A stretch of DNA of 63,019 bases, filler included, from Octopus bimaculoides (lineage: Eukaryota), in assembly GCF_001194135.2 (NCBI RefSeq). It is 9 parts of 9 records of this genome, joined end to end, with 100 filler letters (N's around TTAATTAATTAA, not from the genome) between each part and the next. Parts side by side here need not be neighbours in the genome. Positions count along the whole stretch, not along the records: positions 17,534 to 30,618 come from NC_068991.1; 8 more parts are not named here. One strand, 5' to 3'. The first letter of the stretch is position 1, and the number at the start of each line of letters is the position of its first letter. Positions 20,128 through 21,327 of this stretch are shown in pieces. The notes under the pieces were generated by a model. It was not told the origin of the DNA. It was given only the letters and a program-made list of their open reading frames with translations, and ran no database searches. Made by a program: the position numbers and the translations under genes.

Positions 20128-21327
20128 ATGAATCCTGCGGCAGCTATTCTCCACATGGCTTCCTTGTATGTCGGAGATCTTCATCAAGATGTCACCGAAA
20201 AAATGCTGTTCGAGAAATTTTCTATTTGTGGGACAGTTATTTCAATAAGGGTTTGCAGAGATATGGTGAAAAGGAGATCGCTGGGATACGCCTATGTCAA
20301 TTTCCAGCAACCAACAAATGCCAAGAAAGCTATTGAAATGCTAAACTTTGAACCAATAATGGGACGACCCATAAGAATTATGTGGTGGCAGAGAGATCCC
20401 TCTCTTCGTAAGTCTGGGGTGGGAAACATCTTTATTAAGAACCTGGATAAAAGTATTGATAACCGAGCTTTGTATGACACCTTTTCCTTGTTTGGTAATA
20501 TTTTATCCAGTAAAATTGTATCGGATGAAAACGGTTCAAAGGGATACGGGTTTGTGCATTTTGAGAGTGAAGATGCTGCTGCCTGTTGTGTTCAGAAAAC
20601 GAATGGAATGTTACTTAACGGCAAGAAAGTGTTTGTAGGAAAATTTATTCCACGCAGGGAGAGGATGCACCAACTGGCCGAAAAAGGATTTACTAATGTG
20701 TATGTTAAAAACTTTGGCGATAGCTTCAACGACGAGTCTCTCCGTAAACTATTCGAAAAGTACGGCAACGTCATCAGCGCTAAAGTTATGACAGATAGCT
20801 CCGGTAAGTCAAAAGGATTCGGTTTTGTTAACTTCAACAACCAAGAGGATGCTAAGAAAGCTACCAGTGAAATCAATGGGATGGAGATTAACGGAAAGCA
20901 GTTATATGCTGGTAGGGCTCAGAGCAAGACTGAAAGACAAGCTATTTTGAAAGAAAATTTCCAGACGCTAAGCAATCGAGGAAACAGGAACAGGATGGGC
21001 CACTACCAAGGTCTCAATCTATACATTAAAAATCTTGATGATTCCATCGATGATGAACGACTTCGTTACCATTTCTCTAAATACGGTGCCATTACAAGCG
21101 CAAAAGTTATGATGATAAACGGCCGTTCTAAGGGATTTGGATTTGTCTGTTTTTCCGCGCCAGAAGAAGCGACCGAGGCTGCTCTGAATATGAATGGCAG
21201 AATAATTGATACCAAACCATTGTATGTAGCTTTGGCCCAACGCAAGGAAGAGCGCAGGGCCCAGCTGTCTTCGCAGTTCTTTCAGAGATATGCCAATGGA
21301 TTAAGTCAAAATTATTGGGCATATTAA
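20128..21327 (+). CDS. intronless cytoplasmic poly(A)-binding protein paralog, RRM1-4 only (no proline-rich linker or MLLE)
   Basis: Uninterrupted 399-aa ORF. All RNP2/RNP1 motifs are intact ([56 protein letters not shown]), with the PABPC hallmarks [13 protein letters not shown] and [12 protein letters not shown]. Start context AAAATG; AATAAA at 21357, 21620 and 21641. Confidence 0.93.

Follow-up and report, generated by a model that had tools for sequence, protein, structure and literature searches.

The window analysed here is a stretch of 63,019 nucleotides from Octopus bimaculoides (NCBI RefSeq assembly GCF_001194135.2), joined from nine parts, one of which (positions 17534-30618, from NC_068991.1) contains a gene of the PABPC family, which encodes cytoplasmic poly(A)-binding proteins (PABPs). 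Our scan of this piece for open reading frames (ORFs) identified an intact frame of 399 aa at 20128..21327 on the plus strand, running from ATG to TAA, with four RRMs and no MLLE domain. It is the sole long non-repetitive ORF of the piece; the remaining ORFs of at least 80 aa are translations of microsatellites or N runs. The best database match of the encoded protein has an E-value of 9e-266, which excludes a chance origin of the frame. The exact protein is encoded on O. bimaculoides chromosome CM046611.1 (GCA_001194135.2) at 71,740,307-71,741,506, a locus to which the piece is 100% identical; NCBI labels it "polyadenylate-binding protein 1-like", and the sequence is also present in UniRef and EukProt. 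Its 90%-identity cluster has four other members, namely O. sinensis XP_029642730.1 (again "polyadenylate-binding protein 1-like"), O. vulgaris CAI9729799.1, Argonauta hians GAB1601324.1 and, in Logan assemblies, a sequence of a third Octopus species. The gene model has thus already been annotated automatically, and the advance reported here is one of interpretation, not of discovery; our literature searches found no paper describing a cephalopod PABP without an MLLE domain. The features of the gene are as follows.

19850..20127, plus strand: conserved upstream block, taken as core promoter and 5' untranslated region (UTR); the sole upstream DNA alignable with Argonauta
20128..21327, plus strand: coding sequence of the RRM-only PABPC, single exon, 399 aa and TAA stop
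20164..20373, plus strand: RRM1, approximately aa 13-82, with RNP2 LYVGDL and RNP1 LGYAYVNF; from Pfam and colinearity with 1CVJ, boundaries approximate
20428..20631, plus strand: RRM2, approximately aa 101-168, with IFIKNL and KGYGFVHF, carrying T118, M161 and L162; from Pfam and AlphaFold2
20698..20904, plus strand: RRM3, aa 191-259, the best Pfam RRM_1 stretch; AlphaFold2 agrees
21019..21225, plus strand: RRM4, approximately aa 298-366; from Pfam, AlphaFold2 and a match to PDB 2D9P, an RRM4 structure
21226..21324, plus strand: C-terminal tail, aa 367-399, made up of a post-RRM4 helix and some 12 residues with homology to the beginning of the PABPC linker
21328..21700, plus strand: conserved 3' UTR, with AATAAA at 21620-21625 and 21641-21646, then a GU-rich stretch

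An earlier note on this DNA had described a clean 399-aa single-exon ORF with four complete RRMs, and this description is borne out by the ORF scan, by Pfam, which returned four RRM_1 stretches (E-value 5.5e-81), and by AlphaFold2, which with 24 homologs as input yielded four confident beta-alpha-beta-beta-alpha-beta (RRM) folds. The predicted strands and helices of RRM1 cover residues 11-86, and confidence is low for residues 1-9, 282-294 (the linker between RRM3 and RRM4) and 373-399. The RNP1 and RNP2 motifs are intact in all four RRMs, at positions that do not vary among 24 PABPCs. The protein can be aligned over residues 10-387 with yeast Pab1 (PDB 6R5K), and over residues 1-184 without a gap with human PABPC1 (PDB 1CVJ, 4F02), so that NGMLLN falls at the literal human position 161, where M is retained, as the note had stated. 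No match to MLLE (PF00658) was found in the 399-aa protein by Pfam. The stop lies some 30-33 aa past the Pfam-type end of the RRM4 core, or about 19 aa past the helix that follows it; that it comes soon after RRM4 was noted correctly, while the distance of about 25 aa given for it fits neither end point. The tail, a region of low AlphaFold2 confidence, matches the opening residues of the linker in full-length PABPCs and is near-identical in Argonauta (QRYANGLNQNYWAF). By RRM architecture and by phylogeny (see below) the gene belongs to the PABPC family; by the MLLE domain it does not.

An ORF of 399 codons with identical start and stop is present in O. sinensis, the third Octopus species and Argonauta hians. 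The coding sequences of O. bimaculoides and O. sinensis differ at 18 of 1197 nucleotides and 2 of 399 residues, whereas their flanks are only about 90-92% identical, and the Argonauta ORF carries 141 nucleotide differences that amount to only 14 amino-acid differences. Every octopod comparison, with three orthologs and with the pairwise ratio of nonsynonymous to synonymous substitution rates (dN/dS) estimated by NG86 and YN00, gave a dN/dS of 0.02-0.05, at a dS of 0.54-0.82 against Argonauta; this and the other dN/dS values reported here are within-lineage comparisons with unsaturated dS, the dS between the octopod genes and the third RRM-only lineage described below being saturated. These figures bear on the possibility that the ORF is a recent processed pseudogene, neutral DNA without function whose frame has stayed open by luck. 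Such an origin would fit the lack of introns, the repeat-rich intergenic setting and the disappearance of the C-terminal third of the parent, but neutral DNA would not be expected to differ by 18 nucleotides and 2 residues between flanks that have diverged by about 9%, or to keep the same start and stop codons in all four octopods together with conserved UTRs. The dN/dS values and the intact Argonauta ortholog, at a dS of 0.5-0.8, refute a neutral pseudogene, to which we give hardly any credence. The window gene thus appears from these comparisons to be a functional protein-coding gene, ancient rather than a recent retrocopy, and its earlier description as probably functional stands.

Outside the coding sequence, alignable DNA between Octopus and Argonauta is confined to about 278 nt upstream and 360 nt downstream (19850-21688). 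The upstream block is 81% identical to Argonauta (208/258), as compared with 59% at 4-fold degenerate sites of the coding sequence, and 19655-20127 is 96.2% identical to O. sinensis against about 90% for the wider flanks. For the 3' UTR the identity is 74% with Argonauta (252/341) and 97.6% with O. sinensis; the two AATAAA hexamers and the GTTTTATTGATT after them are invariant, and alignability ends near 21700. This is the signature of a single-exon transcription unit that is compact, about 1.8 kb long, and under constraint. Within the upstream block an ACGTCA/TGACGT motif, resembling half of a cAMP response element, is followed by CTTTAA(A/G)A at 19930-19945 (about -190 from the ATG) and is conserved in Octopus and Argonauta. 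The same combination is also present upstream of the third-lineage gene in two species (L001/L013, about -232), and could be a promoter element common to these genes or mere coincidence. The 3' UTR holds three copies of CAGAGTT (21344, 21496, 21570), two of them inside Argonauta-invariant blocks; as a meaningful motif it was rejected, for its window-wide count is 5 against 2 expected, which is not significant.

The absence of the MLLE domain raises the alternative that the ORF is only a large first coding exon, spliced to distant linker and MLLE exons to give a full-length PABPC. Cephalopods possess at least two full-length PABPC types, which we call A (O. sinensis XP_029650094.1, S. pharaonis CAE1318569.1) and B (S. 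pharaonis, also named Acanthosepion pharaonis, CAE1241689.1, and P0002/P0130), and both score PF00658 at an E-value of about 1e-30. We used the linker and MLLE halves of three cephalopod PABPCs as tblastn queries, with positive controls that worked, and found no linker or MLLE remnant on either strand of 17534-30618 except for the final few residues of the ORF, in agreement with the earlier claim that none is recognisable downstream. Around the orthologous loci in O. sinensis, in Argonauta and in the third lineage, the same searches detected no linker or MLLE coding potential within 10 kb on either side, nor was there any such match in L024 or L025. Cephalopod introns can reach tens of kb (the B gene spans 27.5 kb), and the reach of 10 kb around each locus leaves some room for more remote exons. 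In O. bimaculoides, however, the region free of linker and MLLE matches extends from 10 kb upstream to about 40 kb downstream, save for an unseen gap of 8.3 kb, and three other genomes are likewise negative within their 10-kb flanks. Downstream, the gene that comes next is another complete RRM-only gene, which has a stop of its own; the stop and tail of the first are conserved between Octopus and Argonauta, with the conserved 3' UTR and its two invariant AATAAA signals behind them; all three RRM-only lineages stop within 10-22 aa of one point; and both the NCBI and the O. vulgaris gene models end at the stop of the ORF. We therefore regard splicing to distant exons as very improbable.

A profile search with RRM-only sequences revealed the second RRM-only gene of O. 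bimaculoides just mentioned, P0272 (XP_052827885.1), whose product of 397 aa has four RRMs and no MLLE domain and shares 67% identity with the window protein. The gene, one ORF without interruption, occupies 71,769,823-71,771,016 of CM046611.1 (L024:10001-11194), outside the piece and 29.5 kb downstream from the window gene on the same strand; neither has another annotated gene within 10 kb. Its ortholog in O. sinensis and O. vulgaris is identical at 393 of 397 residues, and the O. vulgaris accession for it (CAI9729800.1) directly neighbours the one for the window-type gene. P0272 resembles the window gene in being single-exon, with four RRMs, no MLLE and all eight clade substitutions listed below, and differs from it in a longer insertion in the RRM3-4 linker, another tail and UTRs without any sequence in common; its stop has no AATAAA within 420 nt. 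A third lineage (the P0007 cluster, P0007/P0129) encodes, counted from the true ATG, 396 aa with four RRMs and no MLLE; it is present in several Logan assemblies, is a single ORF in a 72.8-kb ENA genomic contig, and between two divergent species shows a dN/dS of 0.03-0.045. No repeats were found in common between its locus and the Sepia or octopus loci. The number of paralogs, which the earlier note had proposed to check, is thus raised by a tandem neighbour and by a third lineage.

All three RRM-only lineages share the substitutions I47V, D70E, K78M, S87W, K113R, A121L, C128S and T147S, at positions where 22 canonical PABPCs (of fish, arthropods, molluscs and a brachiopod) show no variation and B is unchanged; they also have in common a deletion of 2-3 residues before FTNVY and an insertion in the RRM3-4 linker. 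A gastropod PABPC model that ends just past RRM4 was seen as well (P0263, Elysia crispata, 398 aa, on a 10,166-nt contig). Since its sequence is canonical, it is probably a model truncated at an intron or contig edge and not a true RRM-only gene.

Neighbour-joining (NJ) trees of 383-385 RRM1-4 columns with 300 bootstraps place the window gene in a cephalopod-only clade (87-97%), outside of which fall the PABPCs of other molluscs, a brachiopod, arthropods and fish. Inside it type A is monophyletic (100%), the RRM-only genes are monophyletic (100%), and the latter group with B (100%). The grouping of P0272 with the third (P0007) lineage, at 79%, may be due to long-branch attraction. B is the closest full-length relative of the RRM-only proteins (74-77% identity over RRM1-4) and shares with them motifs that are missing in A and in other molluscs. 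In Sepia the B protein has 642 aa, including linker and MLLE, and an A-rich 5' leader, and the S. pharaonis gene is made up of nine coding exons over 27.5 kb (L014:10001-37566). Six of its introns, after aa 66, 130, 170, 222, 247 and 325, lie within the shared RRM1-4 region, and the RRM-only genes have none of the six (the coding sequence is a single exon in Octopus, in Argonauta and in the third-lineage sequence L013), which upholds the view of the gene as a retrogene. The end point of the RRM-only proteins falls within the large exon 7 of B, and their tail ends align with the first linker residues. Since the truncation point is inside this exon, the C-terminus was evidently lost through a stop within the coding sequence; intronic polyadenylation, which we considered as a cause of the truncation, is ruled out for the same reason. 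The nesting of the RRM-only clade among cephalopod, and hence mollusc, PABPCs likewise supports the convergence with mammalian paralogs that had been proposed for it. Beyond what the earlier note held, the gene is ancient, one of a tandem pair and related to B, not to A, in addition to being annotated already.

The history that would account for these observations begins with a processed mRNA of a B-lineage PABPC, which would have been retrocopied once in an early coleoid, before the RRM-only lineages separated. The copy would then have been truncated by a stop in the region matching the seventh coding exon of B, with the loss of nearly all of the linker and of the whole MLLE domain, and later duplicated in tandem. 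The type A gene offers another route. In O. sinensis it (XP_029650094.1, 630 aa with MLLE) is one uninterrupted ORF of 1893 nt (L019:3001-4893, CM016881.1), so that the apparently housekeeping full-length PABPC of Octopus is intronless, which may reflect replacement by a retrogene; an RRM-only gene could have arisen from such an intronless A by duplication and truncation at the DNA level, with no retroposition of its own. The tandem pair indicates that RRM-only genes can duplicate in this way, and long-branch attraction between B and the RRM-only genes is not fully excludable with NJ, but the trees put the RRM-only clade with the intron-bearing B at 100% bootstrap and not with A, and the motifs shared by B and the RRM-only genes are missing from A and from other molluscs. 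We consider descent from A unlikely, and retroposition from the B lineage the better account.

In PABPC1, the RRM1-2 unit is responsible for specific poly(A) binding and carries the eIF4G site, the linker promotes cooperativity between PABP molecules, and the MLLE domain docks proteins with PAM2 motifs, such as eRF3, PAN3, TOB, GW182, PAIP1/2, LARP4 and ataxin-2. The linker between RRM1 and RRM2 contacts RNA in 1CVJ, and S87W and other changes of the RRM-only clade lie in or near it. The eIF4G contacts in RRM2 are T118, M161, L162 and D165 (PMC10546976). The window protein keeps T118, M161 and L162, and its position 165 is G, as in every invertebrate canonical PABPC aligned, including octopus A. 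On this basis RRM1-2 would be expected to sit on the poly(A) tail, with RRM2 still able to contact eIF4G. Without linker and MLLE, the protein would not dock any of the PAM2 partners named above (eRF3, PAN3, TOB, GW182, PAIP1/2, LARP4, ataxin-2), and its oligomerisation on poly(A) would probably be weaker. The missing linker and MLLE would therefore uncouple coating and protection of the tail, and perhaps a contact between cap and tail, from MLLE-mediated deadenylation, termination and repression.

The main functional alternative is a repressor that masks poly(A) in the manner of the mammalian neuronal protein neuPABP, competing with full-length PABPC and keeping mRNAs dormant. neuPABP likewise has no MLLE and represses translation (PMC10546976), the RRM4 of PABPC5 and PABPC4L cannot substitute for that of PABPC1 (bioRxiv 10.64898/2026.06.05.728833), and the RRM-only clade has changes of its own in RRM4 (VTE352-354) and in the RRM1-2 linker (S87W). 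neuPABP, however, loses eIF4G binding through substitutions equivalent to T118, L162 and D165 (PMC10546976), whereas in the octopus protein T118, M161 and L162 are retained and G165 is the same as in the canonical paralog. We hold a masking repressor to be less likely than a poly(A) binder that still contacts eIF4G.

Among the proteins of similar build, human PABPC5 (382 aa) also has four RRMs, lacks linker and MLLE and is of about the same size. Its origin is independent, the octopus gene belonging to a cephalopod-specific clade with its own substitutions, e.g. S87W and K78M. PABPC5 has been described as highest in ovary (bioRxiv 10.64898/2026.06.05.728833; PMC10546976). PABPC4L, another human RRM-only paralog, is weakly expressed and little studied (bioRxiv 10.64898/2026.06.05.728833); it is a vertebrate paralog and not an ortholog of the octopus gene, and constraint as strong as that on the latter (dN/dS 0.02-0.05) is not in evidence for it. 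neuPABP (PABPC1L2, from mammalian neurons) has no MLLE and binds poly(A) without PAM2 partners (PMC10546976); it is reported to have lost eIF4G binding, whereas the octopus protein keeps the contact residues, or the canonical invertebrate state, and all four RRMs. Because it is nested in a cephalopod-specific clade, the octopus gene is not an ortholog of the mammalian MLLE-less PABPCs; human PABPC5 and PABPC4L were left out of the NJ tree, and the evidence for non-orthology is to that extent indirect. We predict that the octopus protein works like PABPC5 and PABPC4L, and in part like neuPABP, without being a member of these groups by descent. The vertebrate embryonic protein ePAB (PABPC1L), which retains linker and MLLE, could be a functional analogue if the octopus gene is the ovary "Pabpc1" described below.

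This ovary "Pabpc1" is the one lead on expression. In gonad RNA-seq of O. sinensis, a gene annotated "Pabpc1, polyadenylate-binding protein" (EVM0003110) has 829 fragments per kilobase of transcript per million mapped reads in ovary and 0.36 in testis (PMC11202624). A housekeeping PABPC would hardly be silent in testis, and among the cephalopod PABPCs returned by our searches the O. sinensis proteins that NCBI names "1-like" are two, both of them RRM-only genes. As a lead from the literature only, this points to a germline role, particularly in the oocyte, as the most likely setting.

Taken together, we judge at roughly 75% the probability that the window ORF is a PABPC of old retrogene origin, which would bind poly(A), and probably eIF4G as well, without docking PAM2 proteins, a judgement that is drawn from sequence comparison and modelling. 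Several points weigh against it. No B-type protein from any octopod or squid is among the top matches in a collection of 5.8 billion proteins, all of those recovered being from Sepia-type sources, which could reflect either a lineage-specific loss or a sampling gap; without an octopod B gene, the parent cannot be shown in the O. bimaculoides genome, and the proposed check for an intron-bearing parent has accordingly yielded a relative in Sepia and none among the octopod proteins recovered. No poly(A) remnant or target-site duplications are recognisable flanking the ORF, hallmarks of retroposition whose absence is expected from its age. An imperfect, A-rich direct repeat at 20067-20089 and 21603-21625 (TTGAAAAAGAATAC..., TTGAAAAAAAAAATAC...; 78% identity) is compatible with chance; a TGTTGAAAAAG core is present on both sides of the Argonauta ORF too, and the repeat is too low in complexity for a target-site duplication to be called. 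The short public contigs that carry the gene (L001-L006, L009-L012, L020-L023), which we considered as transcripts, are all colinear with the genome, start in a (TA)n microsatellite and end in microsatellites; they are probably whole-genome reads and give no evidence of transcription. Neither sequence nor primers for EVM0003110 were found in the gonad study (PMC11202624), so that its identity with the window gene is no more than a possibility. The third lineage is assigned to decapodiforms, probably sepiids, by inference only, because it is far from both octopus paralogs and its accession neighbours that of a Sepia-like run, a Sepia-type transcript of which is 98-100% identical to S. pharaonis exons. 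Finally, because S87W and K78M are in or beside the RRM1-2 linker, the RNA preference may be altered, and specificity could differ from canonical poly(A) binding. The ortholog check, for its part, came out in favour of a conserved gene, intact in O. sinensis, the third Octopus species and Argonauta hians.

The surroundings of the gene, described earlier as decayed repeat DNA, are indeed rich in repeats and are better described as intergenic DNA with many microsatellites and repeats, broken by three assembly gaps; 17534-30618 gave no matches in tRNA and Rfam scans. The remaining features of the piece are these.

19645-19654, 26043-26173 and 27584-28179: assembly gaps (N runs)
21770-21893, (GA)n; 22293-22365, (AT)n; 28242-28485, (AAG)n: examples of microsatellites

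The gap at 19645-19654 coincides with an (AT)n microsatellite in other species. Two interspersed repeat copies of about 320-380 nt, at 17845-18162 and 26174-26493, match each other at 93% identity; the element is also present near P0272 (L024:14489-14867) and in O. sinensis (L008:18672-19067), and the repeat has the look of a short interspersed element. A second dispersed family (22803-22917, 23416-23630, 28483-28605; 74-79% identity) has at least four copies around P0272 (L024). In O. sinensis, a 75-nt segment about 1.1 kb upstream of the gene (L008:8874-8948) is a 97%-identical copy of ORF segment 20215-20289; it is absent from O. bimaculoides, where it corresponds to a gap between 19186 and 19220. 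A small segmental duplication could account for it, as could an artefact of assembly.

Mammals have PABPs without MLLE (PABPC5, PABPC4L, neuPABP), whose roles are still unclear. The octopus gene adds an independent invertebrate family, under very strong purifying selection in deeply diverged cephalopods, and because such a family has been conserved, a poly(A) binder lacking partner docking would seem to be a recurrent and useful solution rather than an accident of retrocopying in mammals. Concrete residue candidates for altered RNA or partner specificity are the eight clade-specific changes, S87W among them. Cephalopods are known for unusual post-transcriptional regulation, and if the ovary "Pabpc1" were the window gene or its neighbour, it would provide a handle on the control of maternal mRNA in these animals. 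A more speculative picture, which we hold to be doubtful, is that coleoids rebuilt their PABP set from retrogenes, with octopods having lost B and using an intronless A together with the MLLE-less pair as regulators of maternal tails in oocyte and embryo. The intronless A of Octopus and the lack of an octopod B would, if confirmed, somewhat raise the value of the finding, and if this picture were true, vertebrate ePAB and PABPC5 would have a functional counterpart in the MLLE-less pair, one free of input from PAM2 partners.

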